A stretch of DNA of 64,000 nucleotides, from NCBI GenBank assembly GCA_964247055.1, contig OZ176052.1:7564001-7628000 (forward strand). Reading direction: 5' to 3'. The DNA comes from Paragordius varius. Lineage: Eukaryota; Animalia; Nematomorpha. A program made the position numbers and the translations under genes. Shown piece after piece: positions 11,101 to 33,772 of the stretch (within the stretch, counting starts at the first letter, position 1; each line of letters opens with the position of its first letter). A model generated the notes under the pieces. It did not search any database. It was not told the DNA's origin and was given only the letters and a program-made list of their open reading frames with translations.

Positions 11101-14100
11101 TTCAGCAGCAAGGCAGAAGGTATATCTGGAGGTGTTGGATTCTTGGTAAGGCGCAATATTCTGAGGCGGGTTTCCAACTTTGTGCCGCATCCCCATAGAT
11201 TGGCCGAACTTCAAATAAAAATCAGCACCAAATGTTACACGCTTATTAGCGCTTACGGCCCTCATGACATCTCAGAATATCCTGAGTTTTTGAATGATCT
11301 GGGAACTATTCTGGATTCGGTGCCGGCACGGAATCGCTTTCTGATTTTTGGTGATATGAACTGCAGGGTGGGAAGAAACATATCTTCGTGGGCTATTGGA
11401 AGACACACTCTTACCACTTCCACCAAGGCAGGTAGACTTCTTGCAACCTTTTGTGATAATCGTCGTGATTGGTAACACCTTTTCCCAGATAGCCAACATG
11501 GTCCGTACACAAGAATTGCAAGGAATGTGTGCCCTTCCCACATTGATTTCGTCATTATACGATATAAAGATCTGTCAATGGTGAAGAAAGTTGGCTGCGC
11601 GTTAAACGACCTTATCAACGATCACCTTTTGATCTGCCCTGAGTTACAGGTGGCCTGGGCCCCTCCGCGTCCATTCATAGGTCCGAAATCGGAGTGGGCC
11701 ACTGTGCTTGGTGAGCTCTCTTTTAGAACCAGGCGAAGACATGTTGTCTACGAGGACTGGCTATCTGCTGGGACTAAACGATTTTTCCATGCAATACGAA
11801 ATAAATGTTACACGAGTCGTCGCAGAGCATTGATTAGAGCCAATGCAGATCGCTTGAAACGCAAGGACAGGTAGGCGTTTGTTTCCCTATATTTCACTAA
11901 ACTGGCGGCTAATGAGAAACACTCAAGAGAGCACTATTCAATGATTCGTTTCCTGCTTCGACGGCCCAGACCCTGTACTAGTGTACATTCTCATGGCAGG
12001 CTCATAATAGATAGCCAGAAGAATGTGATCTCTTTGCACCGACATTACACTGATCTGTTGGGGGATAATAAAATGATCCAGGATGACGTTGTCAATGATC
12101 ATCCATTCTCATTGAAATTGGATGAAGGAAAATTTCGCCTAGGTATTGAATTTTTACGAAATTATAAGTGCCCAGGGCCAGACCGCAGCGTGGCAGATGC
12201 TTGGAAGAAGGAAATAGATTGGTGCACTGACAACATCTTATCTATCATCAATAGTTGGCTAGAACGTGGCACACTGATGGAGGAATGGGTGGAATGCGAG
12301 ATAATTAACATTGCAAAACAAGATAATCCAGGCACTCCTAATGATTACAGGGGTATAGCCCTAGTGAATACAGTGTACAAGGTTTTGGCCAACATTGCCC
12401 TGTCTAGACTGCAGTCTTTTGATAATGAACTCCATCACGCAATCTGTGGTTTTAGGCGGGGAAGGGGAACGATGGATTTATTCTGTTCTTTGGTAATTTT
12501 CATCGAGAAAAGCAGGCGGCATAAGGACCCGCTATACTTGGGATTTGTGGATATAGCCAAGGCATTCGATAAACTGGATAGGAAGCATGGCGCTTGCTGA
12601 AGAGGGTTGATATGGGGGAAAACTTCAAGAACTTTATACTTCACTTGATAATCCGTACGCGCAGTCGGGTGGCAGTTGAAACGACCCGTTCGGACTACAT
12701 CTATTCAGAACGAGGCCTGAAACAAGGATGTTCTCTGTCCCCAAAACTCTTTAACTTAGCTATGGACTCAATAGTACGGAAGTTATACACGAGCTTTCCC
12801 AACGTCTTTTTTCAGGTGCTCTGCTATGCAGACGACCTTTGCATCTTAACGGATATGGAGCAGAGCCTGGTGCAGGCCCTAGATCAGCTGGAATCTGAAT
12901 TGACGCCTATATTGGCCTAAATATTAATTATGAAAAGTCAAAAGTGATGATAATAGGTGAGTCTGATGCGAGGATGTTCAAAACTGGGAGGGGAGCTGAA
13001 GGTTGTGGAGTCCTTTCGATACCTGGAAGTTATGGTGGACAAAAACGGATGCGCTCTTAACTTACCTCTACTCAGACTTCATTCCGCAAAGCTTATCTTC
13101 GACGGATTACATTGTTTATGGCGTTCGAAGGAGGTTGGTCAAAGGCTGAAGTTGAAAATATTTAAAAGTCTAATCCTCCCTAGAATTCTATATGGTTTGT
13201 CGGTGTGGCCAAATTCTGTCAAACATACCCGCAAGGCTTAGGCAAGGCTCAGGTATTTGTAAATAAATCGCTAAGAGTCATCACAGGCGACATTTACTTC
13301 AGGAAAACACGGTACCAACTAGCCACTTGTAAGCTTCATCTAAAAACCGATACTTTGCCTTTGGTGCTGGAAATACCATTGTCAAGTCTGAATGTGGTAG
13401 CCCACCAACTACGCCATAACGAAATGAGTCCCTCTTAAGGCGGCACTGGAATGGAAACTGAATGGCCGCCCAATTTATTGGAAGTATAAAAAAACGTGGC
13501 TTGGGCGCATGTGTGTTTTCCTGCAACGTGTGGGCCTTGCGGAGTCGGACTTTGTAACACTAGTGCTGAACGGAGGTTGGAAGAAAAATGTGCCCAGACT
13601 AAGAGAGAGTTGTTAAAGGAAGAGGAGATGATACACTACGCTAAACGGCAACGTCGACGCGAACGCCGGCTTCAGAAACTATCTGCGAAAAGGGCGGACC
13701 CGGTGGGGGACAGTCTTGTCTGTGACCTTAAATACTTAATTAGGGGGTAAATTACATATAATTTAAAATTACTATTATTATCGCTCTTAATTTATCATTC
13801 TAAATTTATCTGTGATACTACATGTTTACTCTATAAGTGGCGCCCCCTGCCCTGAAGCGTGCAAAAGCGCAGGAAGGAGGTAAGGGTCGTCCTGTGCGGA
13901 CAGTGGCGGTTGGAACCATGCCTGCCACACCCTTTGCTGGATACCTGGATAATAATATTGCGCAAGCTATGTATAACCAAACCGTATTACAAATCAAATT
14001 ATTAAATGAAATTTAATAAAACCTATATTTTAAATCAGAATATTTGTTTATTGTTTGTATTTGAAGTAATTTATTTAAAAACTCTAATAAATAAAAAATT

Positions 14101-17100
14101 GGGCAATAGAGCTTAAAAGGACTTCATGTTTAAAGGTTTCCATTTACAATCTTATTCCAAAGGTCCTTATCTAGACATTTGGTAATGTCGAGGTTTAGTA
14201 TTTTTATGTCATTTTTAATGTTGTCGTTCCAGGAATGTGTTGGACGCCCTTTGCGGTTGTTTCCAAAGGGTTGTATGTGATTAATGGTTTGGAGTGGATG
14301 GTCGGTTTTTCTTCTTTCAATGTGACCCAAGTATTTAAGCCTGCTTCTTGTATTAACTTTTCTACTGTGTCATTTCTATGTTTAAGATGAATATTGTAGT
14401 CAGAACAACAAGCTTTAATTATTTTATTTTCCGTATTTATCATTGATTTGTTTTATTTAGGGGCCATGTTTCGGTGGCGTAGGTAAGAGCTGGCCTGACT
14501 CCTGCTTTGTATATTAGCCATTTATTATTGTTAGATACATTTTTATTTTTAAGAACAAATTTTAGAGAGTTAATTTTACCCCATGCATGTTGAAATCGTT
14601 TCCTTATTGCTCCAGTTATATGGCCTTTAGAGTCTATGACGTCTCCTAGGTATGTAAACTTGTCTATTTTTCTATTGAGTTTTCGTCGATTGTCATATAT
14701 GTCGAGCGTGTTTGAGTTGGATTATTGTTTTTACAGTTGTTACATTTAAAGATTATTTGTTCGTTTAGTTTGCCGGTGATTTTGGAGCATTTTTTGTGAA
14801 CCCAGAATTTGCATTTGTTGCATTTTATTGAATTTGTTTTGACTTCTTTGTCGCAGATAGCGCATGTATATTTGGGGCGCTGCGTACGATCTCCTGATAT
14901 CATTATTTTTGTTTTATTAATATTTATTTTCAGCCCATGGTTCTCTTAACAGATTTTCCATGTTCTGAATTTGTTTGAGATGTTTTCCATTGAAGTATCT
15001 GTTAAAACGATATCATCCGCGAAGATTAACTCCCAGGGCGGTTGAGTAGATATGTTTTTTGTGATAAAGTCTAATATTATAATGAATAGAAATGGACTAA
15101 GTACAGACCCTTGGTGTAGGCCAGTGTTTGTCTTGAAAAGTTCCGTGTATCCTATTTGCGTGCGTACCATTGTAGTTGTATTTTTATAAAGAAGTAATAT
15201 TATTTCTATTAAATATTCTTCGATGTAATTTTGTCTTAGGGCCCATTTGATTGTTGCCCTAGGGATATTATCAAAAGCTTTCTCCAGGTCTAGAAATGTG
15301 TGAAAATTTAATTTTTTAAAGGTATTTTTCCTGTAGTTGCCTGATAATGAAGATGGCATCTGTAGTGCTGTGTTATTTACGAAATGCAAACTGATTATTT
15401 GTTATTGTAATGGTTTGTTTAAGGCGGTTGTCAATGATGCTTTCAAATATTTTGAAAGTGTGTTCCAAAAGTTTTATGGGGCGGTATGAGGAGCAGACGA
15501 GACGATATTTCTTATTTATAGGGATCGTTATACTTTTATTCCAGTCATGGGGAATTTCACGTTTGGTAATAATTTCATTTAAAAAAGTTGTAAGGAAGGA
15601 TGTTAAGCATGGTATTGGTTTAAGCAGATCAATTGATAATTCGCTTGCACCTGACGACTTGTTTGGCTTCATTTTTTGTATTGCTTTTCTTCGTTTTTCT
15701 GTGATTTGGTTTTAGTGTTATAGGGATTTTTAAATTGTTGGTTTGGTTCATTGATTCTTCCAAGCTTTCTTTCCATATCTTAATTACACTTTCTGGGTTA
15801 GAGATTATCTCATTCATATTGTTTTTTATACATTTGGTTTTGATATCTTGTTTGTTTGAGTTTATATTCTTTATGTATTTAAAGATTTTTTTATTTTTAA
15901 CCTGGTCCTCTAGTTTAGTGGCCAGTTTTAGGCAATTTTCATTTATAGTTTTTCTAATTTCTTTCTGCGCTTTGTGTTTTGCGATCAGATATGTTTGTCT
16001 GTTTTTATCATTGCTATCCCTTTTCCATGCTTTGAAGGCGTCGTTTTTTTCTTTAGTAACCTCTTTTAATTCCTTTTTCCACCACCAATTTTTCTTTTTT
16101 TTATTTTATGATTTGCATCTCCCACAAATATTATCTGCTGTTTTAACTATTGTTTTTAGGTTATCCCATCTTGAACCAATGGATTCACTGTTTTGCTGGA
16201 GCTTTTCGGATGCCTGGTTGATGTATTTGTTCCTGATTGTTTGATTTTGTAATTTATTGTGGTTAATTTTGACTGGTCTTTGGTATAAGGGTTTATTTTT
16301 TAGTTTTTTCAAGACTGCAATCACTATTTTGCGTTGTGTGAAGCTTGTTTGGTGAGTTTTAATGTTAATTGATTGTGACCGTTTTTTTTAGACAAAAGGA
16401 TATAATCTATCATGGTAGATGAGTTTGCTGTTTGAAAAGTGGTAAGTTGATTGTGGTTTTTGTGAAGTGGGTGTTGGCTATGATTAGTTGGTTTGCTTGG
16501 CAATATTCTAACATCTGTTCACCCATCTTGTCAGTACTGCCATAGCCGTTTCCGCCATGGACTTCCCTGAAATCGTGTTCATTATTACTATTGTGACTGT
16601 TAAAATCACCTCCTAAGAAGATGGATTCCCTGCCTGGTATTGTATTTGTTAGACCTTGGAGTTCCGTCCAAAATTGTTGTTTAATTTCGTCTTCTGGTTG
16701 GGGCGCGTATATCAATATTATATTTAGGATGTAGTTATCGTGCACAACTTTAAGCTGTATAATTCTTTCATTGTGTCTCGTTACTTAGATAACGTTTTCG
16801 CGAAGACAATTTTTAATCGCTATTGCTACACCAGCATGACCATTTTCTTGTCCTTGATAGTAAAGTGTGTAATTGTTCGTGGTAATTAAATTATCTCCTT
16901 CAATCTGGTTTCTTGTAGGCAGCAGATGTCAACATTTTTAGATTCGAGAAAGTCAATTATCATGTGTATTTCCATTTAATGTACCGAAGTTCCAGGTAGC
17001 AAATTTAAATGTGTTGAGATTATTCATAATTCAGGTGTCGTGTTTTTATAATTGTTATATCAGTTTATTATTATAATTATTCGGTATTGGAATCGTTATG

Positions 17101-17796
17101 ATAAAGTAAGAAGTATTAAATTAATTGTTAGGAGGGTTTTGTAATGATTAGTATATAATATTAGTAGTAAGAAAAATAAATAAGATTAAATATATTATTG
17201 TTATGATAGTAGGTAGAAGTTATTAAAAATGTAATATCAATTATTAATATCGTTTCGTTAGAGAGTTAGCAGTTTTTTGAATAAGACGTGTTCATGGTGT
17301 ATAGGTTGAGGCGAGGTTTTTATTTTTCACATGCCCTTGTGAAAAAACTCCTTACGGAGTAGATGTTTTTGCATAACATCCAAAACTGGCCTCTGCTGTT
17401 CGTTCACCAAAGGTGATCCGACCAACACCGCGGGGAGGTAGCAGTAGGACTTTGTTGGTCCTTAAAAGTTTTATGAGAATTTTATTTTTATTTATAATGT
17501 TATGATTTTAATGCTAAATTATTTTTTATATGATATTAAGATATCCCTTTTACTATTATTGGTTGTTATAGAAAAAATTATTATAACAATTGAATATATT
17601 TTTTTTTAATTAATAGATTTATTTTTCCAACAATGTTTTTTTATACCAATATTGTAAGGAATAACCCATTTTATTATTAATATGTATGGATTAATTCAAA
17701 GTTTTTTGGTTATTTAGTATTACGGCTTCTTTTAGAAAGTTATAAATATTAAAAAAAATATAAAAAAATTTTCGGTTTTTATATAAAAAGCTTATT

Positions 17797-17831
<35 letters not shown>

Positions 17832-20307
17832 TACATTATATAAATGCAGGATGAGACTTGTCCTTATAATTTGTTGGATATGTTTTGATTATATAATATT
17901 TTTATTTTAATATCACTTCATATAGGGTTGTGTTTTAGTGTTCTTCCTGATATACCACCACCCCCAAGGTAATGAAAATAACTTTACGTTTAGTTTGATC
18001 AACATTTACAAAGAATTACAGGATGATATCGAAGGATTTATCATACCAAAACATGGCTACTTACATGGATGGGCTAAGCAAGGTAAGTATACTAATGAGA
18101 AATTGCATTTTAATATGAAGTAAATATTTATCAAGAGTTTTACAAATAAAGCAGTAAAAGTATATTGTGTAAAACTCTACTAACTATATAATTGAAATAT
18201 ATAAAAAAAAATTAAATACTACAACATTTTTATTTCTAAAAGCTTTAGTGGCAAAACCAACACAAAAGCTCATAAATGGTTAAGATTTTTTCTTTTAATT
18301 TTGTGATCTTTCCCTTTTATTATTTCAAATTCGTTTTTTCATTATTTGAGAAAAAAAAGGGGTATACTATATTTTTTTGCAGCTTATGTTAACATTTTCA
18401 TCACACTTTATTGTAAACATTTAAATTTGTAAAAAAGAATGACTTTACTGGAACTAATCCGGTTTTGAATCCCTTATATTTTTATTGAATAAATTAGCAA
18501 TTACTATTATATTACATAAAAAATTACAAAAGAACAAAATATATTATTTTTGTTCAATAATTGCTATATTATAGGTGTTCTTTTATTAAACTCTGTTTTA
18601 ACTGTCCGTCAAAACGAAGCAAATTCACACAAAGATAAAGGTTGGGAAACTTTCACTGACTACGTAATTTCTTATTTGAATAAGAACCAAACTAACCTTG
18701 TGTTTATGTTATGGGGGGCTTATGCTCAAAAGAAAGGCCAAGCCATTGACAAGGTAAAATATTTTTGTAGCAAAATTATTAAATAAATAGCCATACTTTA
18801 CTTAGGGAGAAATAAAAAATTAATCTGGTTATAAACTATTGCATTGTTCAAAATTAATTGAAAATCTACAATTACAGTGTGATACAACTTTTTCTGGATC
18901 TTAAATTTTTACAATTTTCTGATTCCTTATGGTATTAGGATCAGATCTGTGAAAAAATTTAGCTATCGAGGTCGTTTTCGAATGGGACTTTTTCCAAATT
19001 TGGCTATTTTCAATATTTTCTTATTTGTAAATATTTTTATTTAGTTAAACAAATAATACTTGGCTTCTAAAGATTTTTTTTATAAAAACTCAACACACTA
19101 TCTCTAAAAACATCCAATACTTTTTGTTTCATCGGTGAACAACCCCAAAAAATTGGGTAAGTTACATTTTTTGCGACAAATATTTATCATTATGTTATAT
19201 AACAAATTTTTTTTATTTTTTTGGATGTTTGTAATATTAGTTTAAATATAAATATCATCGTGTTGTAGCTTTTTAGACTTTTATTATTGGAAATAGATAT
19301 CTTTTTTACACGTTTTTTGATAAAAAACGCTAAAATTTACTCAACTGGAATTACTAGACTCTTTATTTCATCTGATATTTTTGAATATTTCCCATATATA
19401 TGTTCCACCATACTAAATATTTTGCCTATAGAAATATCATCCTAAGTAAATTTTCCTCATAAATTTCGGATGTTCGACGGGTAAAAATATTGTACACCAA
19501 AAAATCTAAGAGAATAAACTATTAGGACGGTAAGGATGTCGTTTGTGGACTGTTGTGATAGAAAGCATTCATATTCGAACTCGGTGAAGATACAAAAGAA
19601 CGCTTAATATATTTTTTCTTTGTTTCATAGATTATTATAAAATCAACAATATATCGATTTGCAGCTAAAATTTATATTTAATGCCACGGACCATCAAGAA
19701 AAATTATATATGCTATCGTAATATTCTAAACATCAAATGGATTGATAAAGTCTCTAATCAACTGAGAAAAGAAAACCAGCTATTACACTCGACAACATAA
19801 CATATAAAAATCAACTAGGTGTCCTAGGCCATATTTTAAGCAGGGGACCTTTCGGTTTATCGATATTAGTGGGAATGGTTGGCAGTAGATGAACTCGTGG
19901 TTGATCTCCAATATTTTACCATGACCAAGTACCTATTTGCAACAATTTGGATCTAAAATCACTGTGGGTGTCAGCTAATAGATTAGCTTGGGAAAATCTC
20001 TAGGTACTATGGTCGCATACGACTGCGCAGAATAAATAAATATGGAGAATATGCCACACATATAATACCATCAATTTATTTCGGTTCTTTAATTATTTTA
20101 ACTTAGCCTTTTGAAGTTTTTTATATATCAAAAATAAGAATCAATTTATGGAATTATACTATTAATTAACAAATCCATATTAAAGTTGGATTAGAGTGAA
20201 TATTAATTAAAGTGTAGATTTTGGTCAGGAGATCTAAGGCACGGATTTTGGAATATAAGTAAATTAGGTGTAATACATAAAGAACAAATAAAATAAATAA
20301 TTTAATA

Positions 20308-20377
<70 letters not shown>

Positions 20378-23300
20378 CACTGTGTGCAAAAAAGAGGGTT
20401 AGATGAGATAGCTTATGACCAGCTTCTTCATTTGCCGAAAATTTTTTTATATGTTGACAACCTAGTTTTTGAAATATTGAGAGAAAATCGAAATCGGGCA
20501 AAAAGTGAAAATTAAGAATAACACTAAACAACAAATTTTAATTTTTTTTAACTGCCATTCTTGTAAATTTAAAATTTATTTCATTAAAGTATTGTTTATC
20601 TGAAAAGAAAATTGGTCTAGCATGCAAGAATTTTTTTATATTAGAGAAAGTTATTTGGATTTAAATGGTCGAAATTATCAATCCTTAAATAACTCAAGAT
20701 TCACAGCAAATTAATTTTGAAAATCATATAAATTATTTTAATATAATTATTAGGGTTATATTAGTATTTAATTTAAAAAATGTTTGAAAAAGCTTTTGGT
20801 TTGCTTTTTTAATAAAAATTATTATTATCATAAATATTTTACCTAGTGGATACTAAAATGCATAATTATAATTGTAAATTTATTACATAATAGCTATAAA
20901 AGATAAAATGCCTTAAACTTTGCTTTTATCTTTAAAATTTCGAAATTATCAGCCTCGTAAAGAAAATAAATTAATATTGATGAAATGGTAATTTTTTAAA
21001 AACAAAAAACTTAAAAATGGCTGTTTTGAGTGGCATAAAAGCAATAAAAAATGTTTTAATCAAAAAAACTTTTTTTATCTTTTTTGGACATTCATTACCA
21101 TCTAAACAAAGTTTAAGCTATTTTCATCCATTAGTTTTAAAAATATAATAATTAAAAAAAATGCTCTCGCTTCCCGCGTTTGTCGCTCTTTGTGTCCAAT
21201 ATTAACTGTCGATGTAATACATATTAGTATGCATTTTATAGAGTTTTTATTACTCTTTCGAATGATATTACAAAGCATTACTTGTATATTTTCGAAGAAA
21301 AACATTTTTTAGTAAAATTTTGATAAAGAGGGCGCATAATCAAAAAAATCAAATTATACAAAATTCTTCCATCGAGTTATAATTTTTATTTCAGATTTAC
21401 TGTTAAAATGATACTAAATATCAGGAAATGCAAAAAACTCGAGTGGCAGAAAAATTTGTTGTCCAGTGTAATTAAATTTGAGATATTATGGTTTATTATC
21501 ATTTTAGGATATATTTTCAATATATAAATAGCCTAAAATCATATAGTTAGGGTTTCTATAAAATTTCAGCTCAAAAGATGGCGTTTTTCTGTTAACACAC
21601 TTAAAACACAATTTTTTTTAATGAAACTATATTAAAATAATTTTCTTAAATATTTACTACCTAAGTGTTGGTTTATATTCCACTACTTTTAAATCCTATT
21701 TTGTATAAATTATATAATCAATAACTCCTACTTATGTAGGATTCCAAAATAAAACAGTATAAATTTTTTATATACTCATAAACCAGATGACAAAAAATGC
21801 AAAAATAAAAAACAATATTTTTGGTTTTATTAGTTTTTTTACTGAAAAATATGTTAAGATTTTAATAAGGAGTTTAGGTAAACTAATTTAAAAAAATAAT
21901 TTTAATATAGTTTCATTAAAAATTTTTGTCTTTTAAGTGTGTTTAAAGAAAAACGCCATCTTTTGAGTTGAAATTATATAGAAACCCTAACTATATGATT
22001 TTAGGCTATTTATATATTGAAAATATACCCTAAATAAACCATAATATCTCAAATTTTATCATTATTTTTGAATTACAGTAAAATATGTAATTATCCGGAC
22101 GAATTTTTTAACTAACGGACATAATTTTTTTATAAGAGACAGAGTGTTAAAATCAAAAGATCATAATTTTTAATTGGCGGACAAATTTTTTTTTATACGG
22201 ACAAATTTTTTTTCAACGGACAAATTTTTTTTTATACGGACAAATTTTCGATTATACGGACAAATTTTTTTTTATACGGACATAAATCCGAAATATAATA
22301 GGGTAAGAGGAGCACTTATCTATAACCCTGGACAACATTTCTGCTACTCGAGTTTTTGCATTTTTTGATATTTAGTATCATTCTAACATAAGTCTAAAAT
22401 AAAAATTATAACTCCTTCTAAGAATTTTGTATAATTTGATAGTTTTGATTATGCGCCCTCTTTATCAAAATTTTACTAAAAAATGTTTTTATTTGAAAAT
22501 ATACAAGTAATGCCCATTTGTAATATAAAAAAGTAATAAAAACTTAAAATGTATACTAATATGTATTACATCGACAGTTATTATTGGACACAGATAGCTA
22601 CAAACGCGCGAAGCGAGAGCATTTTTTTAAATATTATATTTTTAAAACTAATGGATGAAAATAGCTCAAACTTTGTTTAGTTGGTGATGAATGTCCATAA
22701 AAGATAAGACAAGAAGGTTTTTTTGATTAAAACATTTTTTATTGCTTTTATGTCACTCAAAATAGCTATTTTAAAGTTTTTTGTATTTTAAAAATTACCA
22801 TCTCATCAATATTAATTTATTTTCTTTACGAGGCTGATTATTTCGAAATTTTAAAGATAAAAACAAAGTTTAAGGTATTTTTGATCTTTTATAGCCATTT
22901 ACAGTTATAACTATGCATTTAATATCCACTAGGTAAAATATTATGATAATAGTAATTTTTATTAAAAAGACAAACCAAAAGCTTTTTCAAACATTTTTTT
23001 TAAATTAAATTCTTATATAACGCTAATAATTATATTAAAATAATTTATATGATTTTCAAATTAGTTTGTCTGTGAAAATTTTTGATTTATATAACGATTG
23101 AAAATTTCGACCATCTAAATCCAAATAACTTTTATATCCGATTGATATAAATGACTTACCACCAATAAGATGCAGTTTTTTGCGCTCTTTCGAGTTTAAT
23201 GTTAAATCGGGGCCAAAAATTATCGATAAACCTAATATTAAAAAAATCTTGAATGCTAAACCAAATCTCTTTTCAGATATACTAATTATGTACTTTAATG

Positions 23301-26300
23301 AAATAAATTTTAAATTTACAAGAATGGCAGTTAAATAAAGTTAAATTTGTTATCTAGTGTAATATTGATAAATAATAACTTTTTGAATTCTAGTCGACTA
23401 AATGTTTACTTTGTATTTTATAAGAAGCTTTAAAAATATAACATTGCATTTCATAATGACCGACTTAAGAATAAACCATTTATGATTTAATTTTAACTAA
23501 TATATTAAATGAATAGGATTTATAAAATCTCACATTTAACTAAAGGCAAAATATTATTTCATTTGCATTATTAACACCAATCATACCGTCATCTATTTGT
23601 AAAATTAAAAAAAAAACCTTATCATAACTATATTCATTTCAAAGATATTTTACTACTGAAAAACAATAATAATCCAATTTTTCATTTTATTAATCTTATT
23701 TTAACAATGTTTCCAATCTTATAATAAGGTTTAATCGAAAACAATAGTCTAATGGGCTTCTACACTGACTGTATTTTTATGTAACATATCAACTCTCTTT
23801 ATTATATTGTTAAATGGGACAACTTTCAATTAACGACATGATGGGACTCTTCTTAATATTAAACATCTACCGTAAAAGCTCAATAAGCAGACGATTAAAT
23901 ATTAATCGTCTGCCTTTGGTATCAAATATAACTGCAATATAATGTAATAGAGACAATAATTTATTAAAATAATATTTATATGAAAATAACATCAATATAA
24001 ATAAATAGTAAAAAAATAAATAATGGTGAAAAAAATAAAAACACTAATAAATGCCTTAAAAAATTTTTATGTCCGAAAACAGTTACTGATTAACCCTATG
24101 GATCGCAATAAATTAGAACGGGAACAAGTTTTACAGTTTTTTTACAGTAATGAAGAGATTTCCAACTATTAAATATATGCCTGCGGTTGAAATATAAAAT
24201 ATTTGATGATGATTTATAAAATAATATTTTAATCATCCCATACATCATAAATAATGTCTATACACCGTATTATCTAAATAAGAAAATGATATTAGCTATA
24301 AAAAAATAGATCCAACTTAAATGATTCACAACAAAAATCATATGAATTTTCAGGTAATAAATTTAATTTTTTTAAACAAACATTATTTAATATTTTATCT
24401 ACATGTTCATAATATTTACTTAAATCCTTATTATAAAATATTTTAGAAACTTCTTTTATATTTTTATCCATATTTAAATCTTTCTTATTTAGGGCTCGTA
24501 ATTTGTGTTTAAATTCATGGAAAATACACTCAATAGGATTTAATTGAGGTGAATATGGTGGCAAAAAAATTAAATTTTCGAATTCTTTATTTCGAGAATA
24601 ACGATGAGGGGCATTATCCAAAATTATATAGGATGTTGAAGGTATTATTTTAAAACATTCCTGTAAAAAATGGTATATATCATCCCCATTGTATGGGTCA
24701 GATTTATATTCATATTTTATCATTCCATTTATTCCAATCATAGCCAAATAGTTTATATTTTTACCTCTTGGCTTACGTTTAATCGTAGGAAATTCTCCCT
24801 TTTTACACCAACAATATAAATAAAGACTGTAATCATTGATTCCAGTCTCATCCATATAATATATGTCGCTGTGCAAAAACTGTAAAACTTCCCACGCATA
24901 AGTATACCTATGCTCTATTATTTCTATTTTATTGCGATTTATAGGCTCAATCTGAGCCTGTTTTCTTACAAAAGAATTTTTTTAAGCATTTATATAATGT
25001 AGTTTTTGATATTTTTAATGAATAAGGAATAGAATCTAAAATTTTATCAATTGTGATATTATTATTTTCATTTAAAATATTTTCTATGGCTTCCTTTAAT
25101 TTACAATCATCATATTTTGGCTTGCGGCCACTTTTTTTAGGTGGGATGTGAAGGCCGACGTTCAATCGCCTGCGATATTTATAAATTGTTGATCTGGACA
25201 TTTTTAAAATGTTCATATTGTCCGTCATAATATTATTCGAAGTGGACGGATTACTGAAAAGGCTCTTAGCAATTTCATTCTTTTCATTTGTCCAACTTCC
25301 TCTGCCTTAACCAAATATTCACAAAGAATTTATTATTTTAGATAGTTGAATAAACAATTCTTATATTTAACAGGTAATTAATTATATTATTTTATTAAAT
25401 TTTTTAAAAGTTATTGATTTAATCGGTATAATGCAACTAGAATAACTTTTTTAAAATAAAGAGGAAGACATATCAATTAACTTATGTAAATATATTAAAA
25501 TTTGCAAGATTTTCATATATATATGTGAAATATAATATCTAGACTATTCCCACTTGAAATAATTATTTTAAATAACGTCGATCTTAAACCTTGAAAAAAT
25601 ATATGCAAAAATATTTAAAGGAAATTATGTCGCATAAAACACAAAAAGTTACTAGAGCTAGCACAATGGTATTATTGAATATAATATAATTTGAAATGTA
25701 TATACGTTTTCTTTGACGAATCGTATCATCTTCGTTGTTTTCTGAACATATAGATGAAGATGGCGATGACGGTGAGAATGATGGTGAGCGTATAATTGAA
25801 CGATTTTCTGTACAATCATCATAGAAATCTAAAGGTGAAATTAAATTTTACCATAGGTGTGATCCATTAATAATTACTATAGGCCGAATAAAGAGTATTA
25901 AATATAAATATTGTTAACGTATATTAAAAGTGATTAAATTAAGATGAAAAGACTATGGGTACACGTAAAAAAATAATAATTAGTTAATAAATTATTATAA
26001 ATTAAAATTGATTAAATTTAAGATAAAAAGATTATGGGTACAAAAAAGAACAAAATAATTAATTAATAAAATTAAAAAATTTCGAAATTTGATATGTGTA
26101 CTAGGTTTTTTGACAGGGGGGTTCATTTAAATGAACTCATATTCGGTACCTAATTCCATTTTTATATTTGACTTATGATAATACACTAGTTTATAATATA
26201 AAATAAATTTGGCCGTATTTAAATATTTTATGGTTGTAAGATAAAAAAATATGTAAATTTAACTATTTGATGTTTTAATCAATACGCTACTATCACCAAA

Positions 26301-29300
26301 CGGGAGCAAAAAATAAAGTAAATTGACTACCAATAATATGCATACGGTAAATATATGTATAAATCTGTTGCTCGCCTGTCAAAAAACCTAGTACACATAT
26401 CAAATTTCGAAATTTTTTAATTTTATTAATTAATTATTTTGTTCTTTTTTGTACCCATAATCTTTTCATCTTTAATCAATTTTAATTTATAATAATTTAT
26501 TAACTAATTATTATTTTTTTACGTGTACCCATAGTCTTTTCATCTTAATTTAATCACTTTTAATATACGTTAACAATATTTATATTTAATACTCTTTATT
26601 CGGCCTATAGTAATTATTAATGGATCACACCTATGGTAAAATTTAATTTCACCTTTAGATTTCTATGATGATTGTACAGAAAATCGTTCAATTATACGCT
26701 CACCATCATTCTCACCGTCATCGCCATCTTCATCTATATGTTCAGAAAACAACGAAGATGATACGATTCGTCAAAGAAAACGTATATACATTTCAAATTA
26801 TATTATATTCAATAATACCATTGTGCTAGCTCTAGTAACTTTTTGTGTTTTATGCGACATAATTTCCTTTAAATATTTTTGCATATATTTTTTCAAGGTT
26901 TAAGATCGACGTTATTTAAAATAATTATTTCAAGTGGGAATAGTCTAGATATTATATTTCACATATATATATGAAAATCTTGCAAATTTTAATATATTTA
27001 CATAAGTTAATTGATATGTCTTCCTCTTTATTTTAAAAAAGTTATTCTAGTTGCATTATACCGATTAAATCAATAACTTTTAAAAAATTTAATAAAATAA
27101 TATAATTAATTACCTGTTAAATATAAGAATTGTTTATTCAACTATCTAAAATAATAAATTCTTTGTGAATATTTGGTTAAGGCAGAGGAAGTTGGACAAA
27201 TGAAAAGAATGAAATTGCTAAGAGCCTTTTCAGTAATCCGTCCACTTCGAATAATATTATGACGGACAATATGAACATTTTAAAAATGTCCAGATCAACA
27301 ATTTATAAATATCGCAGGCGATTGAACGTCGGCCTTCACATCCCACCTAAAAAAAGTGGCCGCAAGCCAAAATATGATGATTGTAAATTAAAGGAAGCCA
27401 TAGAAAATATTTTAAATGAAAATAATAATATCACAATTGATAAAATTTTAGATTCTATTCCTTATTCATTAAAAATATCAAAAACTACATTATATAAATG
27501 CTTAAAAAAATTCTTTTGTAAGAAAACAGGCTCAGATTGAGCCTATAAATCGCAATAAAATAGAAATAATAGAGCATAGGTATACTTATGCGTGGGAAGT
27601 TTTACAGTTTTTGCACAGCGACATATATTATATGGATGAGACTGGAATCAATGATTACAGTCTTTATTTATATTGTTGGTGTAAAAAGGGAGAATTTCCT
27701 ACGATTAAACGTAAGCCAAGAGGTAAAAATATAAACTATTTGGCTATGATTGGAATAAATGGAATGATAAAATATGAATATAAATCTGACCCATACAATG
27801 GGGATGATATATACCATTTTTTACAGGAATGTTTTAAAATAATACCTTCAACATCCTATATAATTTTGGATAATGCCCCTCATCGTTATTCTCGAAATAA
27901 AGAATTCGAAAATTTAATTTTTTTGCCACCATATTCACCTCAATTAAATCCTATTGAGTGTATTTTCCATGAATTTAAACACAAATTACGAGCCCTAAAT
28001 AAGAAAGATTTAAATATGGATAAAAATATAAAAGAAGTTTCTAAAATATTTTATAATAAGGATTTAAGTAAATATTATGAACATGTAGATAAAATATTAA
28101 ATAATGTTTGTTTAAAAAATTAAATTTATTACCTGAAAATTCATATGATTTTTGTTGTGAATCATTTAAGTTGGATCTATTTTTTCATAGCTAATATCAT
28201 TTTCTTATTTAGATAATACGGTGTATAGACATTATTTATGATGTATGGGATGATTAAAATATTATTTTATAAATCATCATCAAATATTTTATATTTCAAC
28301 CGCAGGCATATATTTAATAGTTGGAAATCTCTTCATTACTGTAAAAAAACTGTAAAACTTGTTCCCGTTCTAATTTATTGCGATCCATAGGGTTAATCAG
28401 TAACTGTTTTCGGACATAAAAATTTTTTAAGGCATTTATTAGTGTTTTTATTTTTTTCACCATTATTTATTTTTTTACTATTTATTTATATTGATGTTAT
28501 TTTCATATAAATATTATTTTAATAAATTATTGTCTCTATTACATTATATTGCAGTTATATTTGATACCAAAGGCAGACGATTAATATTTAATCGTCTGCT
28601 TATTGAGCTTTTACGGTAGATGTTTAATATTAAGAAGAGTCCCATCATGTCGTTAATTGAAAGTTGTCCCATTTAACAATATAATAAAGAGAGTTGATAT
28701 GTTACATAAAAATACAGTCAGTGTAGAAGCCCATTAGACTATTGTTTTCGATTAAACCTTATTATAAGATTGGAAACATTGTTAAAATAAGATTAATAAA
28801 ATGAAAAATTGGATTATTATTGTTTTTCAGTAGTAAAATATCTTTGAAATGAATATAGTTATGATAAGGTTTTTTTTTTAATTTTACAAATAGATGACGG
28901 TATGATTGGTGTTAATAATGCAAATGAAATAATATTTTGCCTTTAGTTAAATGTGAGATTTTATAAATCCTATTCATTTAATATATTAGTTAAAATTAAA
29001 TCATAAATGGTTTATTCTTAAGTCGGTCATTATGAAATGCAATGTTATATTTTTAAAGCTTCTTATAAAATACAAAGTAAACATTTAGTCGACTAGAATT
29101 CAAAAAGTTATTATTTATCAATATTACACTAGATAACAAATTTAACTTTATTTAACTGCCATTCTTGTAAATTTAAAATTTATTTCATTAAAGTACATAA
29201 TTAGTATATCTGAAAAGAGATTTGGTTTGGCATTCAAGATTTTTTTAATATTAGGTTTATCGATAATTTTTGGCCCCGATTTAACATTAAACTCGAAAGA

Positions 29301-32300
29301 GCGCAAAAAACTGCATCTTATTGGTGGTAAGTCATTTATATCAATCGGATATAAAAGTTATTTGGATTTAGATGGTCGAAATTTTCAATCGTTATATAAA
29401 TCAAAAATTTTCACAGACAAACTAATTTGAAAATCATATAAATTATTTTAATATAATTATTAGCGTTATATAAGAATTTAATTTAAAAAAAATGTTTGAA
29501 AAAGCTTTTGGTTTGTCTTTTTAATAAAAATTACTATTATCATAATATTTTACCTAGTGGATATTAAATGCATAGTTATAACTGTAAATGGCTATAAAAG
29601 ATCAAAAATACCTTAAACTTTGTTTTTATCTTTAAAATTTCGAAATAATCAGCCTCGTAAAGAAAATAAATTAATATTGATGAGATGGTAATTTTTAAAA
29701 TACAAAAAACTTTAAAATAGCTATTTTGAGTGACATAAAAGCAATAAAAAATGTTTTAATCAAAAAAACCTTCTTGTCTTATCTTTTATGGACATTCATC
29801 ACCAACTAAACAAAGTTTGAGCTATTTTCATCCATTAGTTTTAAAAATATAATATTTAAAAAAATGCTCTCGCTTCGCGCGTTTGTAGCTATCTGTGTCC
29901 AATAATAACTGTCGATGTAATACATATTAGTATACATTTTAAGTTTTTATTACTTTTTTATATTACAAATGGGCATTACTTGTATATTTTCAAATAAAAA
30001 CATTTTTTAGTAAAATTTTGATAAAGAGGGCGCATAATCAAAACTATCAAATTATACAAAATTCTTAGAAGGAGTTATAATTTTTATTTTAGACTTATGT
30101 TAGAATGATACTAAATATCAAAAAATGCAAAAACTCGAGTAGCAGAAATGTTGTCCAGGGTTATAGATAAGTGCTCCTCTTACCCTATTATATTTCGGAT
30201 TTATGTCCGTATAAAAAAAAATTTGTCCGTATAATCGAAAATTTGTCCGTATAAAAAAAAATTTGTCCGCCAATTAAAAATTATAATCTTTTGATTTTAA
30301 CACTCTGTCTCTTATAAAAAAATTATGTCCGTTAGTTAAAAAATTCGTCCGGATAATTACATATTTTACTGTATTAATCTCAATATTTCGAAATCTAGGT
30401 TGTCAACAAATAAAAAATTTTTTGAAAAATGAATACGCTGGTCATAAGCTATCTCACGAAAAAAATATTTTTTCACACAGTATATATATATATATATATA
30501 TATATATGATCACAAATTAAATTTATATATATATATATATATAATCACAAATTAAATTTATATTATTTCGATAGGTTTTTTCGAAGAGTTTTTAAAGTTG
30601 ATGTCCCTTTTCGCCTCTTTGATCTGTGATAGCGTCTTTGGGAAATACATACAGATGGGAAGCCAACCACCATATGAAGCTTCAACTCATGCGGTATCCT
30701 ATATTTTTGGTAAAAAAGAATATAAATGTTTAAATAGCATGTGTATTATTTTATACATATCCATCCTATAGAAAGAGTCGATTAAACAATTGCCTAATTC
30801 CAGGTAATTGTTATTTTTTAAATTTCCCTAAAAATCTTGGAAAAAAGTTCGCAATGCAACCCATTCCGCTCTTTCTTTGGATTGCATTTTAGATTCAAAC
30901 GCCACATCGTTCTAAAGATTCGTAACCTAAAATTAAATGTATAATACCTGCGGCCCTATCAAAACTGCGGCGTTAATTTTTGGGGAGCGTCATCCTAAAC
31001 TTCCGAAGTAATGGGCCCAAGCTTCGCCATTTTTATCAAGATTACACAAAAATGTTTTGGCCCATCCAAGCAACGTGTGCAATGATGGCAAAACAAATGA
31101 GGAAATCTTGTACCCAACTTCATATTCTCTTGAAGGCCAATTTTTTTTGTGTTGTGTTTTTCGGTGTCACGCGAAAATACTAACCCAAAGAGCGGCATGG
31201 GTTGCATTGAGAACCTTTTTCCAAAATTTATTGGGAAATACAAAAATGACAATTACCTGGAATTAGTCAATTGCTTAATCAATTCTTTATATGGGATGGG
31301 TATGTAGGTTATAATAGACGTGTTATCATTTATAATATTTTTTTTATCCAAATTTATAGGATGCCGCATGAGTCTTAAATTTTATGTGGGTTCCCATCTG
31401 TGTCTGTTTTTTAAAGACGCTATTACAGTCAAAGAGGCGAAAAGGGACATTTATTATTATAAAACCCTTTGAAAAAATTACCGAAATAATAAAAATTTAA
31501 TTTGTGATTATAATATGAATAAATAAATTAGTTATTTATTTGTTCTCCATGTTTTACATTTAATTTACTTCCATTCCAAAATCAAGTAAATTATCCTTGT
31601 CGTTATTAATATTCACTCTAATCCAACTTAAATTTGGATTTGTTAATTAACCGTGTAATTCTATAAATTAGTTCTTATTTTTTGATATATAAAAAAACTT
31701 CAAAAGGCTAAGTCAAAATAATTAACGAACCGATTATTGATGGTATTATATGTTGTATAAAACTGTTTTAAACATTTTTTATAAGATATATGGCATATTC
31801 TCCATATTTATATTTATGCTACGCAGTCGTATGCGACCATAGTACCGAGAGATTTTTCCAAGCTAATCTATTAGTTGACACCCACAGTAATTTTAATTCC
31901 AAATTGTTGCAAATAAGTACTTGGTCATGGGAAAATGTTGGAGGTCCATCACGAATTCCTTTACCGCCAACCCTTACCACTAATATCGATAAATCGAAAG
32001 TTTCACTCCTTAAAATATGGCCTAGGAAACCGATTTGATTTTATGTATTATGTTGTGGAGTGTTATAGCTGGTTTTCTTTTCTTTTCTCAGTTCATTTGA
32101 TGTTAGAATATTGCGATACCATATATAATTTTTCTTGATGGCCCATGGCATTTAAATATAAATTTTAGCTGCAAATCGATATATTGTTGATTTTATAAGA
32201 ATCTATGAAACACAGAAAAAATATATAAAAGCGTTTTTTTGTATCTCACCTTGTTCGAATATGAGTGATTGCTACCACAACGGTCCACAAACGACACCCT

Positions 32301-33772
32301 TACCGTAATAGTTTATTCTCATATTTTTTGGTGCAATATTTTTACCCGTCGGACATCCTAAATTTATTAAGAAAAATTTACTTTGGATAATATTTTTTAT
32401 ATTTTAGGCATAAAATTTAGTATTGTTGCATTATGGGAAATATTCAAAAATACAAATATCAAATATAAAGAGTAATTCCTGTTGAGTAAATTTTAGCTTT
32501 TTTTAATTAACACTTGGATACAACACATTCATTTCAGTCCTTCAATTCAAATTGGGGTAGTTGGATACCCCAACCTAATTAAATTAAATAATTCAAAAAA
32601 TATGGAATGAATTGAAATCATGGCAAAAGTTTGCACATTTACATTAGTGAACCGAAATATAAAAGTTTTTTTCAAAAATACTTGATATTACTTATTTTTA
32701 GGTAAAGCCTCAAGTAAAAATTTAATCAACATGACGTGTGTGCATTAGCTAAATTTAAAAGTAATACAAAATACACCACTTTTTCTGTTTCTATCAATGT
32801 TTAATATGATTTAAATAAAAAACTAGCTTGAGTCTTAACTTTAAAATTAAACAAACACGATATTTTGCAAAAATGTTTTAAAATAAAAATGGCGTTTAAG
32901 TAGTTTGATATGGAACTTTTTTATCAAAACAGTTTTATTTAGATCTTTCGGCCTTTTTATATAATTTTTATTAGGATAAAAACATAAACTTAAATTGTAC
33001 AGTTTCTTTCAGTAGTTTTTAAAAAATTTTATCTTAAATATAGTCTGGGGTATTTAGATACCCCACTTTGAATCCAAGTGTTAAAATAAAATTATTTTTT
33101 AAAATAAAAAAAGCTATAATACAATGATATTTATGATTAAATAAATATTATAAACATCTAAAAACATAAAATAAAATTTGTTTTAATATAATATGATGTT
33201 AAAAATATTTAGACAAAAATATTAACTTACCCAACTTTTGAGGGTTTTTGCGTGCTGGAACAAAAAGTGTTGGATGTTTTAAGTTATTTTTTTTTATTTT
33301 GAAGATAATTGTTGGCCTTTTTAAAAATGTCTTTATAAGCCACATATTATTTGTTTAACAGAAAAGATTTACAAGCGATATATTTTTGCAAAAAGTCCCA
33401 TATCTTGAAAACGACCTCGATAACTAAATTTTTCCACAGATCTTATCCCAACACCATAAGGAATATAAAAATTGTAAAGATTCAGATCCAGAAAATTGAC
33501 CGCAAATTTTATTACAGTAGTGTTATCTTTATCTATCCTATATTTATCTAACATGTGTGATTACTTATATTACTTCATGGATTAAAAATATTTTTTGGCA
33601 TGTGTAGAAAAAACATCTCATACTAAAAGCATCGCATCCATCACCCCTTTCTGCACATAGGGGTTGGTTTGGATGTAAACATTTTTCGCAAACAAACGCC
33701 TATCTCAAACAAAACAATATTAAAGAAATCGATTGGTCACATTTACCTTTGGGAGAAAACAAATCGCTATAA
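8134..33772 (+). CDS. UNG: Uracil-DNA glycosylase (family 1, UNG2-like), 6 exons, 277 aa
   Basis: Exons 8134-8340, 8364-8514, 17926-17968, 17994-18082, 18575-18753, 33608-33772 sum to 834 nt, all GT-AG and in frame. Motifs [54 protein letters not shown]-box-like N-terminus ([10 protein letters not shown]). Confidence 0.97.
8341..8363 (+). other. 23-nt spliceosomal mini-intron (UNG intron 1)
   Basis: GTAATGTTTTTGATCATATTTAG. Removal gives YFLK|LEMFLEKER, gap-free against the UNG family consensus (human YFIKLMGFVAEER). Retention shifts the frame. Confidence 0.92.
8661..10320 (-). mobile_element. Inverted, near-identical duplicate of the 3' 1.66 kb of the LINE at 10408-13952
   Basis: Reverse complement of 12294-13952. 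ORF-track peptides are identical (e.g. 9694-10020 vs 12594-12920). I found about four substitutions, all in the outer ~200 bp. Confidence 0.95.
10321..10407 (-). repeat. Short diverged third copy of LINE sequence at the inner palindrome junction
   Basis: Matches 9168-9255 (GTGCCGCCTTAAG...CAGCAC) with a few substitutions and one small indel. Confidence 0.85.
10408..13952 (+). mobile_element. Decayed RTE/RTEX-like non-LTR retrotransposon (EN-RT-Cys finger) in UNG intron 2
   Basis: Endonuclease [23 protein letters not shown] from 10930. [40 protein letters not shown]. Cys-rich C-terminal stretch. Many stops and frameshifts. 5' boundary approximate. Confidence 0.88.
14120..17460 (-). mobile_element. 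Full-length decayed RTE retrotransposon with PHD-like finger insert and 5' HDV-like ribozyme
   Basis: Endonuclease start ([10 protein letters not shown]) near 17030; GGDFNSH; [33 protein letters not shown]; CAIC..C..C..WVHKKC..C..C; C-terminal GHIERR. 8-bp direct repeat CTTAAAAG at 14112-14119 and 17461-17468. Confidence 0.88.
17393..17460 (-). ncRNA. HDV-like (nested double pseudoknot) self-cleaving ribozyme
   Basis: Minus-strand RNA reads P1 GACCAAC, J1/2 AAAGUCCUA, P2 CUGCU, P3 ACC, L3 UCCCCGC, P3' GGU, P1' GUUGGUC, GG (P1.1 with CC of L3), P4 UCACC-UUU-GGUGA, J4/2 ACGAAC with the catalytic-C position, P2' AGCAG. All core helices are Watson-Crick paired. Confidence 0.9.
17969..17993 (+). 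other. 25-nt spliceosomal mini-intron (UNG intron 3)
   Basis: GTAATGAAAATAACTTTACGTTTAG. Removal restores the conserved PPPPS|LINIYKEL. Confidence 0.95.
20312..20376. repeat. (TA)n microsatellite; partner tract at 30481-30545
   Basis: Pure TA runs. Other TA runs occur at ~17797-17826, 39506-39528, 48944-48966 and 57178-57208. Confidence 0.95.
20522..21468 (+). mobile_element. Non-autonomous CMC (Chapaev3/CACTA-like) element, copy 1
   Basis: TIR CACT(A/G)(A/G)ACAACAAATTT, 3-bp TSD TAA/TAA. Internal sequence is shared with copies at 22327, 29127 and 61263. Confidence 0.8.
21471..22059. mobile_element. Foldback element with ~190-bp imperfect TIRs
   Basis: 21471-21663 is inverted relative to 21873-22059 (e.g. 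AAAAGATGGCGTTTTTCT / AGAAAAACGCCATCTTTT). Confidence 0.8.
22327..23359 (-). mobile_element. Non-autonomous CMC element, copy 2 (in left arm)
   Basis: Mirror image of 29127-30160. Confidence 0.8.
24292..25228 (-). pseudogene. Tc1/IS630-like transposase, left-arm copy (HTH ORF + DDE ORF, split by a frameshift)
   Basis: HTH ORF 24947-25228; DDE ORF 24292-24876 with [21 protein letters not shown]. Confidence 0.88.
26620..26781 (+). CDS. Putative spliced 5' exons of the transposase or a second element gene (mirror copy on - strand starting at 25867)
   Basis: ATG at 26620, 23-nt GT-AG intron 26636-26658, then an open Ser/Asp-rich stretch ([41 protein letters not shown]). A join to 27182 would be in frame with the HTH ORF, but that acceptor is a weak AAG. 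Confidence 0.45.
27259..28123 (+). pseudogene. Tc1/IS630-like transposase, right-arm copy
   Basis: HTH ORF 27259-27540; DDE ORF 27611-28123. Same A7 frameshift as the left copy. One homopolymer difference shortens the C-terminus relative to the left copy. Confidence 0.88.
29127..30160 (+). mobile_element. Non-autonomous CMC element, copy 3 (in right arm)
   Basis: CACTAGATAACAAATTT...GTTGTCCAGGG; TSD TTA/TTA. Confidence 0.8.
30541..31511. mobile_element. Foldback element with ~330-bp imperfect TIRs
   Basis: 30541-30875 is inverted relative to 31180-31511 (e.g. TGTCCCTTTTCGCCTCTTTGA / TCAAAGAGGCGAAAAGGGACA). Confidence 0.85.
32511..33080 (+). mobile_element. piggyBac-type MITE, copy 3
   Basis: TTAA at 32507-10 and 33081-84; it interrupts the right arm of the outer foldback. 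Confidence 0.85.

Follow-up and report, generated by a model that had tools for sequence, protein, structure and literature searches.

Intron 5 of UNG, a uracil-DNA glycosylase gene, in Paragordius varius raises the question whether the mirror symmetry of a giant intron is maintained to assist splicing, or is brought along by the transposons that fill it. Self-comparison of the window, by which we mean the whole 64-kb stretch of DNA analysed here, showed that inverted repeats occupy nearly all of this intron, and an earlier note on the same DNA had read them as able to fold into one giant hairpin. Judged by sequence comparison, the symmetry stems from transposons and gives no sign of having been kept to help splicing.

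UNG intron 5 and its outer element

As read from the sequence, the intron (14,854 nt, forward strand) opens with GT at 18754-55 and closes with AG at 33606-07 (Table 1). The flanking exons are in frame across the junction and encode successive parts of the UDG domain (Pfam positions 49-97, then 112-141). All repeat pairs listed in the earlier note, TA tracts and TIRs included, were recovered to within a few bases, and its estimate that pairing starts ~120 nt past the donor and ends ~90 nt before the acceptor agrees with the 121 and 85 nt measured here for the edges of one outer element. With its nested inserts this element accounts for 98.6% of the intron length, which is why the repeats bridge the intron ends, and the distances of its edges from donor and acceptor imply an ancestral intron of ~203 nt.

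Table 1. Features of UNG introns 2 and 5 and of their surroundings (positions in the window).
Feature	Position	Strand	Remarks
UNG intron 2	8515-17925	+	9,411 nt; internal counter-example, ends unbridged
UNG exon 5	18575-18753	+	open frame to QAIDK at the exon end; weak Pfam UDG match (E=0.0012); donor GT 18754-55
UNG intron 5	18754-33607	+	GT..AG; UDG domain resumes beyond
Putative ancestral intron 5' remnant and left TTA duplication	18754-18874	+	remnant 118 nt; duplication 18872-18874; from the 16-end alignment
Outer foldback-type non-autonomous DNA transposon with nested inserts	18875-33522		14,648 bp, ~3.97 kb own sequence
Left arm, segments A and C	18875-20304		pairs with 31509-32505 and 33108-33495, 73-80% identity
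Left half of the (TA)n microsatellite that element 2 splits	20305-20377		partner tract 30482-30545
Element 2	20378-30481		TIR pair 20378-20520 and 30374-30481 with CACTGTGTG tips
1.13-kb repeat family copy	20521-21472		155-bp internal deletion; short ACACT.. TIRs
~0.6-kb MITE	21473-22073		~190-bp TIRs 21471-21664/21874-22059
8.3-kb palindromic Tc1/IS630-like transposon	22076-30371		arms 22076-26117 and 26375-30371, loop 26118-26374
Left-arm transposase remnant	24292-25228	-	HTH ORF 24947-25228 and DDE_3 ORF 24292-24876 in different frames
Right-arm transposase remnant	27259-28123	+	mirror image; ORFs as in the left arm except for the C-terminus
Native centre of outer element	30520-31529		B/B' inverted pair 30520-30874/31187-31529, 79% identity
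Right arm, segment C'	31509-32505		
573-bp MITE in right arm	32506-33078		TTAA-flanked, ~70-nt TIRs
Right arm, segment A'	33079-33522		
Right TTA duplication and putative ancestral intron 3' remnant	33523-33607	+	duplication 33523-33525; remnant 82 nt, closes with the acceptor AG
UNG last coding exon	33608-33772	+	includes the stop codon; Pfam UDG positions 112-141

The outer element has the tips CAGTGTG...CAGTAGTG and is flanked on both sides by a TTA target duplication. Alignment of 16 element ends placed the start of conservation at CACTGTG, directly preceded by TWA, and matching TWA duplications were found for the window copy and seven of eight other copies of the family. At least 52 matches occur in the genome, many of them as inverted pairs 1-6 kb apart, and the dispersed copies carry the conserved tips together with target duplications. 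One intact copy (L008) is collinear with the outer element of the window but free of its 10.1-kb and 573-bp inserts, and the layout of arm, centre and arm is common to the window copy, L008 and the short copies L012-L016. The segment 30520-31529 had been counted in the earlier note among four side inserts; it occupies the same place between the two arms of L008 and of L012-L015 and is the native centre, whereas the other three (starting at 20521, 21473 and 32506) are indeed separate TIR elements from abundant families. The inverted arms, which pair as 18890-19274 with 33108-33495 (73% identity) and as 19321-20319 with 31509-32505 (80% identity), make up most of the outer element and leave a short centre. 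By this structure and its dispersal, it is best described as a further member of the already known foldback-type transposons. The 3-bp TWA duplication is a target type that we take to indicate PIF/Harbinger, and the CACTG-type tips presumably fit CMC (CACTA/Chapaev) too; for the outer element as for element 2 (see below), both superfamilies are candidates that would fit. A Harbinger-type DDE_Tnp_4 remnant lies at 53244-53702, with no CACTGTG tip linked to it within the 64-kb window, and no autonomous partner for the outer element emerged from the analysis.

Nested inserts and the palindromic Tc1/IS630-like element

The left arm of the outer element hosts a 10.1-kb composite, and the right arm a 573-bp MITE, whose family yielded 3,924 first-look candidates with 82-87% identity. 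The composite is formed by a TIR pair (element 2) and, inside it, a 1.1-kb element, a MITE of 0.6 kb and a palindromic Tc1/IS630-like element of 8.3 kb. The TIRs of element 2 (79 nt alignable, 89% identity) belong to a family with 1,138 first-look candidates, in which inverted partners normally lie ~1.0-1.1 kb apart; here the distance is 10.1 kb, owing to the three elements situated in between. The copy at 20521-21472 is collinear with the full one at 61261-62389, as well as with those contained in the two palindrome arms. Each layer of the intron is a member of a repeat family whose copies elsewhere show the same mirrored layout. As the 10.1-kb block is located in the left arm, off the centre of the outer element, the layers do not form the single concentric hairpin proposed earlier, and the predicted RNA would be branched.

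Immediately beyond its CAGT...ACTG tips, the palindromic element is flanked by TA duplications (22074-75 and 30372-73). Its 4-kb arms, correctly described before as near-perfect, match in 99.9% of the aligned columns and show 45 gap columns, being two indels and four substitutions apart. The left-arm transposase remnant matched the Pfam families DDE_3 (E=2.6e-20) and HTH_7 (E=3.2e-5), and the split between the HTH and DDE_3 frames suggests that the gene is probably broken. A TA duplication and a DDE_3 transposase with N-terminal HTH are features of Tc1/mariner, but instead of one transposase gene between short or moderate TIRs the element has two mirror-image copies within its 4-kb arms, leaving only 257 nt of unique sequence. 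It is a structural variant of the Tc1/mariner superfamily. The same architecture and termini were found in two further copies (L001 and L002) on two other contigs, and L003-L007 are shorter deletion derivatives, of which L004 adjoins a VPS41 exon and L007 a 170-aa open frame that resembles the tail of a LINE reverse transcriptase and gave no Pfam match. Within copies, the two arms are between 100% and 87% identical. The three full copies, which differ from each other by ~4%, carry 75, 71 and 58 copy-specific substitutions common to both arms, compared to 0-9 single-arm variants per copy. Because the arms of each copy share its own substitutions, the near-perfect arms are a trait of the family, and are maintained by arm-to-arm copying, be it gene conversion or the regeneration of an arm from its partner. 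With two transposase copies and arms kept identical within each copy, this family is of some wider interest.

Palindromic chimeras are a known artefact of long-read sequencing, and arms with 99.9% identity, like the 1.7-kb LINE arms in UNG intron 2 (99.8%), could in principle reflect the assembly of fold-back chimeric reads. We regard this as extremely unlikely, since TA duplications and CAGT tips bound the palindrome on both sides, its arms differ by the indels and substitutions given above, the 8.3-kb layout is found again on two further contigs and in five shorter derivatives of graded arm identity (100% to 87%), and the LINE family forms inverted head-to-head pairs at no fewer than three other loci. 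A different question is whether a perfect 4-kb inverted repeat inside the transcribed intron of a housekeeping gene serves as a constitutive source of dsRNA and small RNAs for silencing the Tc1-like family, several copies of which are young. Read-through dsRNA from transposons triggers RNAi in nematodes, and such a side function would be compatible with a neutral origin of the intron. It appears unlikely nonetheless, as the transposase frames are already split and the sequence gives nothing to tell such a hairpin from an inert insertion.

In ordinary nesting, transposons insert into earlier insertions, the youngest lies innermost, and every insertion belongs to a family and carries a duplication of its own. 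Following this scheme, a ~4-kb non-autonomous foldback-type transposon would have inserted at TTA, 118 nt past the donor of a ~203-nt intron, and would then have acted as a harmless landing pad on which five more elements were collected. The TTAA-flanked MITE would have entered the right arm and element 2, a short TIR element, the (TA)n tract in the left arm, with the 1.1-kb element and the 0.6-kb MITE ending up between its TIRs, and the 8.3-kb element, inserted at TA, may have been the most recent arrival; this order is deduced from the divergence of arms and copies. The self-complementarity of the intron would then be the sum of the inverted repeats with which cut-and-paste transposons are built. 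Neutral nesting of this kind, raised in the earlier note as the alternative to a role in splicing, is very probably correct and is the reading best supported by the TTA duplications and by the mirror architectures at unrelated loci. UNG intron 5 would thus be a well-resolved case of the ~70-fold growth of a small intron by one insertion and subsequent nesting.

Pairing of the intron ends and the tolerance of giant introns

The complementarity of the intron ends noted earlier was confirmed in silico. Their dimer has a predicted MFE of -353 kcal/mol, compared to -168 kcal/mol for the separate folds and -179 to -198 kcal/mol for shuffles, with 332 intermolecular pairs, and complementary segments near the donor and near the branch point or acceptor are what is expected of stems that assist splicing. 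In a genome whose spliceosome prefers very short introns, an intronic transposon might persist only when the folding of its RNA leaves donor and acceptor no more than ~200 nt apart, and long introns should then be enriched in end-bridging foldback cargo. The predicted pairs and the closeness of the element edges to both splice sites (121 and 85 nt) are consistent with such a filter, as are the 23- and 25-nt introns of UNG, the presence of another palindromic copy within a VPS41 intron, the lack of introns >3 kb among ~45 myosin introns and the distance-shortening intron stems established in yeast (PMC7404189). If true, it would tie transposon architecture to intron size limits in animals with ultra-short introns. 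However, a single TIR element in a ~203-nt intron bridges the ends trivially, so that end-bridging does not discriminate between the readings; it is what a TIR element can be expected to leave behind, and not evidence of function. Moreover, the outer arms, the sole layer that the filter would need, are the most decayed (73-80% identity, 157 gap columns), and their 161 mismatches (40 G:U-compatible versus 33 A:C, p=0.48) lacked the wobble bias on the sense strand that would be expected if pairing had been maintained in evolution. For the centre pair B/B', wobble-compatible mismatches numbered 21 versus 8, a nominal excess that speaks the other way (p=0.024, uncorrected over five comparisons). 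The same architectures also occur outside coding introns, as in foldback copy L015, ~200 nt downstream of whose end the first coding exon of a P5-ATPase gene begins.

Other introns point in the same direction. UNG intron 4 has 492 nt, and ordinary introns of ~300-2,900 nt are common in UNG and eight myosin genes, indicating that the spliceosome is not confined to mini-introns. UNG intron 2 contains ~8 kb of LINE cargo, namely a head-to-head pair (8656-13959) and a second LINE (~14130-16900, reverse strand), and no complementarity >13 nt was detected between its ends; ~4.1 kb remain unbridged beyond the LINE hairpin, including 2.8 kb of non-palindromic LINE. Selective persistence of end-bridging transposons therefore seems quite improbable to us, and the earlier adaptive idea, in which looping-out makes giant introns tolerable to a mini-intron spliceosome, finds no support here.

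In this micro-intron genome, self-complementarity might also act as a survival filter for intronic transposons, with foldback RNA looping itself out to re-create a short effective intron and almost only hairpin cargo left in giant introns, LINEs integrated by chance as head-to-head pairs included. Long inverted repeats within the 64-kb window concentrate in the two giant UNG introns, both of which carry near-perfect long hairpins, and since the ~45 myosin introns include none >3 kb, giant introns appear to be rare and the few existing ones could be a filtered set. We consider this highly unlikely all the same; the claim that only self-complementary cargo survives is at odds with the LINE cargo of intron 2 in the very same gene. 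Under neutral nesting, the RNA hairpin of intron 5 would be a by-product rather than a selected feature.

Comparison with known systems

Like Drosophila FB, Galileo/Kepler/Newton and Tetris, the outer element consists mostly of long inverted arms and is largely non-coding, multicopy and flanked by target duplications, but it differs from them in its CACTGTG tips and its 3-bp TWA duplication. For Galileo, PMC4168063 describes long TIRs like those of Foldback elements, yet a standard transposase superfamily (see also PMC4079207). The 8.3-kb element shares the TA duplication, CAGT tips, DDE_3 domain and HTH with Tc1/mariner elements, including the long-TIR variants known from Bari (PMC4877112); it differs from these elements in its arms of 4 kb, in each of which a complete mirror-image transposase gene lies together with a nested element of 1.1 kb.

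With regard to RNA structure, the closest parallel may be the yeast intron 'zipper' stems that join the 5' splice site and the branch point (Howe and Ares 1997, as summarised in PMC7404189). UNG intron 5 is likewise complementary near its ends and could, according to the in-silico folds, shorten the effective distance; the yeast stems, however, are described in that summary as tens of nucleotides long, with their importance shown by mutation, whereas those of intron 5 are predicted stems of kilobase transposon arms. In the non-conventional introns of euglenids and the symmetrical (stw)introns of Hypoxylaceae, RNA structure joins the ends or terminal inverted repeats could render the intron double-stranded (PMC3935182, PMC4770533, PMC8469720). 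In those cases it is the repeats that delimit the intron, and its borders are non-canonical or target duplications are absent, while UNG intron 5 is a pre-existing canonical GT..AG intron whose repeats belong to transposons with duplications. Reverse-complementary, transposon-derived repeats also fold pre-mRNA in circRNA back-splicing (PMC8516420), but there the repeats come from different introns and it is exons that are looped out, whereas both arms considered here lie in one intron. Compared with ordinary nesting of transposons in introns, UNG intron 5 is essentially the same, and what is unusual is that all six layers are of the TIR or foldback type.

Structure of UNG and of its fifth intron

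The uracil-DNA glycosylase gene UNG lies in a genome of 110.6 Mb (44 contigs, G+C content about 25%), and its exon map was built from exons that were read and searched singly against Pfam (see table). As the interval 18754-33607 has GT/AG borders and the UDG domain runs on across it (Pfam positions 49-97, then 112-141 in the flanking exons), it was assigned as an intron. Removal of the 23- and 25-nt introns restored the conserved UNG frame (...EYFLK/ and ...PPPPS/LINIYKEL...). Searching the genome for the UDG family gave no match and missed this UNG itself, as its exons are too short; the result is therefore silent on paralogues. The end of a copy of a 573-bp, TTAA-flanked MITE family was found at ~8050-8096, 38 nt 5' of the UNG start codon, with more copies in the window at ~5.0-5.7, 7.5-7.9, 34.6-35.8 and 45.3-45.8 kb. 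On the plus strand, 40719-42026 holds a single-exon ORF of 435 aa with many hydrophobic segments, resembling a multi-pass membrane protein, with neither a Pfam match nor a record in the public gene look-up.

A repeat scan and self-BLAST of 18754-33607 confirmed that the inverted repeats described in the earlier note are real and far beyond chance. Their arrangement as one concentric hairpin did not hold, as comparison with an intact copy of the outer family elsewhere in the genome (L008) places the large insert in the left arm. RNA of intron 5 would thus branch, with an outer stem around two large side-by-side hairpins.

Features of UNG and of its intron 5 (window positions)
Feature	Position	Remark
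UNG exon 1	8134-8340	
UNG intron 1	8341-8363	23 nt, GT..AG
UNG exon 2	8364-8514	
UNG intron 2	8515-17925	9,411 nt
UNG exon 3	17926-17968	
UNG intron 3	17969-17993	25 nt, GT..AG
UNG exon 4	17994-18082	
UNG intron 4	18083-18574	492 nt
UNG exon 5	18575-18753	
UNG intron 5	18754-33607	14,854 nt; GT 18754-55, AG 33606-07
UNG last exon	33608-33772	
1.13-kb family copy in element 2	20521-21472	collinear with 61261-62389; 155-bp deletion
0.6-kb MITE in element 2	21473-22073	
8.3-kb palindromic element in element 2	22076-30371	CAGT tips, TA duplications
Transposase ORFs, left arm	24292-25228 (-)	
Transposase ORFs, right arm	27259-28123 (+)	
573-bp MITE in right outer arm	32506-33078	TTAA-flanked
Inverted pair	18890-19274 / 33108-33495	73% identity
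Inverted pair	19321-20319 / 31509-32505	80% identity
Inverted pair	20286-20482 / 30378-30568	81% identity
Inverted pair	21471-21664 / 21874-22059	88% identity
Inverted pair	22074-26117 / 26375-30373	98.8% identity counting gaps, 99.9% in aligned columns
Inverted pair	30520-30874 / 31187-31529	79% identity

The outer foldback element and its inserts

The left outer arm gave at least 52 genome matches at 70-80% identity, many of them inverted pairs 1-6 kb apart, and ten such loci were taken for comparison. Alignment of 16 element ends showed that conservation starts exactly at CACTGTG; the bases -3 to -1 are TTA or TAA, with matching direct duplications in seven of the eight other copies. The copy in intron 5 occupies 18875-33522 between two TTA triplets (18872-74 and 33523-25); without the element and one of these triplets, the intron measures 118 + 3 + 82 = 203 nt. 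Therefore, the pairing that had been noted from ~120 nt after the donor to ~90 nt before the acceptor matches the ends of this element, and its position reflects the footprint of one TIR element that landed in an intron of about 200 nt.

The collinear copy L008 and five short copies of the family (L012-L016) revealed a foldback-like build, in which the arms lead into a short centre. From the same copies, 30520-31529, which had been taken for a TIR-bounded side insert, is the native centre of the outer element. In L008 the equivalent of 20291 joins the equivalent of 30523 directly, and hence everything between these positions was inserted in the left arm and not in the centre. The outer element's own sequence amounts to ~3.97 kb here (18875-20377, 30482-32505 and 33079-33522). 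The TA tracts lie on either side of a second element (element 2), whose CACTGTGTG tips are at 20378 and 30481, so that the paired tracts represent one microsatellite split by its insertion. First-look candidates numbered 1,138 for the TIR family of element 2, with a usual partner spacing of ~1.0-1.1 kb compared to 10.1 kb here, and 3,924 for the 573-bp MITE family. A search of the window with the outer-element tip patterns yielded no elements beyond the two already known. A remnant of a PIF/Harbinger-type transposase was observed at 53244-53702 on the minus strand (DDE_Tnp_4, E=4e-11); it is possibly a relative of the enzyme that moves this TWA-duplicating foldback family.

The palindromic Tc1/IS630-like family

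Each 4-kb arm of the innermost element carries an HTH ORF and a DDE_3 ORF (DDE_3 E=2.6e-20) in different frames. At their C-termini the DDE ORFs of the two arms diverge (194 vs 170 aa), owing to an indel of ~16 nt near 24375/28111, and the transposase gene of this copy is probably inactive. The 8.3-kb architecture and its termini are repeated on two other contigs (L001 501-8891, L002 528-8829), and deletion derivatives were detected at five more loci. Near-perfect arms of this length might be explained as an assembly artefact; such an origin is disfavoured by the TA duplications and by the gradient of within-copy arm identity (100%, 99.9%, 98.3%, 98.7%, 96.7%, 89.5% and 87%). The near-perfect arms are instead a trait of the family. 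Alignment of the six arms of the three full copies showed these copies to be ~4% apart, with 75, 71 and 58 copy-specific substitutions common to both arms and only 0-9 single-arm variants per copy; similarly, six copies had a nested 1.13-kb element in both arms and two had it in neither. Together, the shared substitutions and the both-or-neither pattern indicate that the arms are copied onto each other, which is part of the biology of this family regardless of where a copy is located.

Pairing of the intron ends and splicing

The earlier note had proposed that pairing of the intron ends loops out the cargo and thereby aids splicing. When the 5'-terminal 547 nt of intron 5 were co-folded in silico with its 3'-terminal 529 nt, 332 intermolecular pairs formed and the dimer MFE was -353 kcal/mol; the two ends folded separately gave -168, and shuffled partners gave values between -179 and -198. 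Pairing of the ends is thus possible by this model. However, the outer arms are the sole layer that a splicing aid requires, yet they are the most decayed one, and their 161 mismatches include 40 G:U-compatible vs 33 A:C (p=0.48). The centre pair showed a nominal wobble excess (21 vs 8; p=0.024 without correction for the five comparisons made), to which we gave no weight because a transcription-linked mutation bias yields the same signal. The foldback or palindromic architecture also occurs in other settings. At L015 (4218-4499) a foldback copy ends ~200 nt 5' of the exon in which the coding region of a P5-ATPase begins (Pfam P5-ATPase 5-74), likely in a promoter or 5' UTR position; palindromic copy L004 starts ~150 nt past a VPS41 exon; and L007, another palindromic derivative, adjoins an open frame of 170 aa that resembles the tail of a LINE reverse transcriptase and gave no Pfam hit. 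These contexts show an architecture that is not confined to coding introns.

The further suggestion that only self-complementary cargo survives in introns is contradicted by intron 2. It contains a full-length, G+C-rich LINE at ~10411-13959 (+) with endonuclease and RT domains, a 5'-truncated inverted copy (8656-10410) head-to-head with it (arms 99.8% identical), and a second, non-palindromic LINE at ~14130-16900. Neither complementarity of more than 13 nt between the 5' flank of intron 2 and its last 4 kb nor internal inverted repeats in these last 4 kb were detected, so an unbridged length of 4.1 kb or more is tolerated in this intron. Most copies of the LINE family are plain, but inverted head-to-head pairs of it recur at no fewer than three other loci; hence the palindrome in intron 2 looks like an integration product, and the pairs suggest snap-back or twin priming at integration. 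Nor was the premise of a spliceosome limited to mini-introns borne out. A Myosin_head search of the own genome gave ~70 exon matches in eight genes, in which introns between adjoining exons measured ~100-2,900 nt (usually ~300-2,900 nt) and none exceeded 3 kb; together with the length of intron 4 this shows no such limit. Counting end-bridging repeats would not discriminate between the two explanations, since any single TIR insertion in a short intron bridges its ends.

Therefore, from the decayed outer arms, the copies elsewhere, the counter-example of intron 2 and the introns of ordinary length, an adaptive looping-out is unsupported, and neutral nested insertion of TIR elements, which the earlier note had offered as its alternative, is favoured with high confidence. 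The parts of intron 5 are of ordinary kinds, namely foldback-like non-autonomous DNA transposons, MITEs and a Tc1/IS630-like element, of which the last is unusual in its palindromic build; the outer element is comparable to the foldback-like DNA transposon Galileo (PMC4168063). In yeast, stems formed by the ends of an intron are an established aid to splicing (PMC7404189), and structures joining intron ends have been described for euglenid non-conventional introns and symmetrical stwintrons, but none of these is built, as intron 5 is, on kilobase-long transposon arms.
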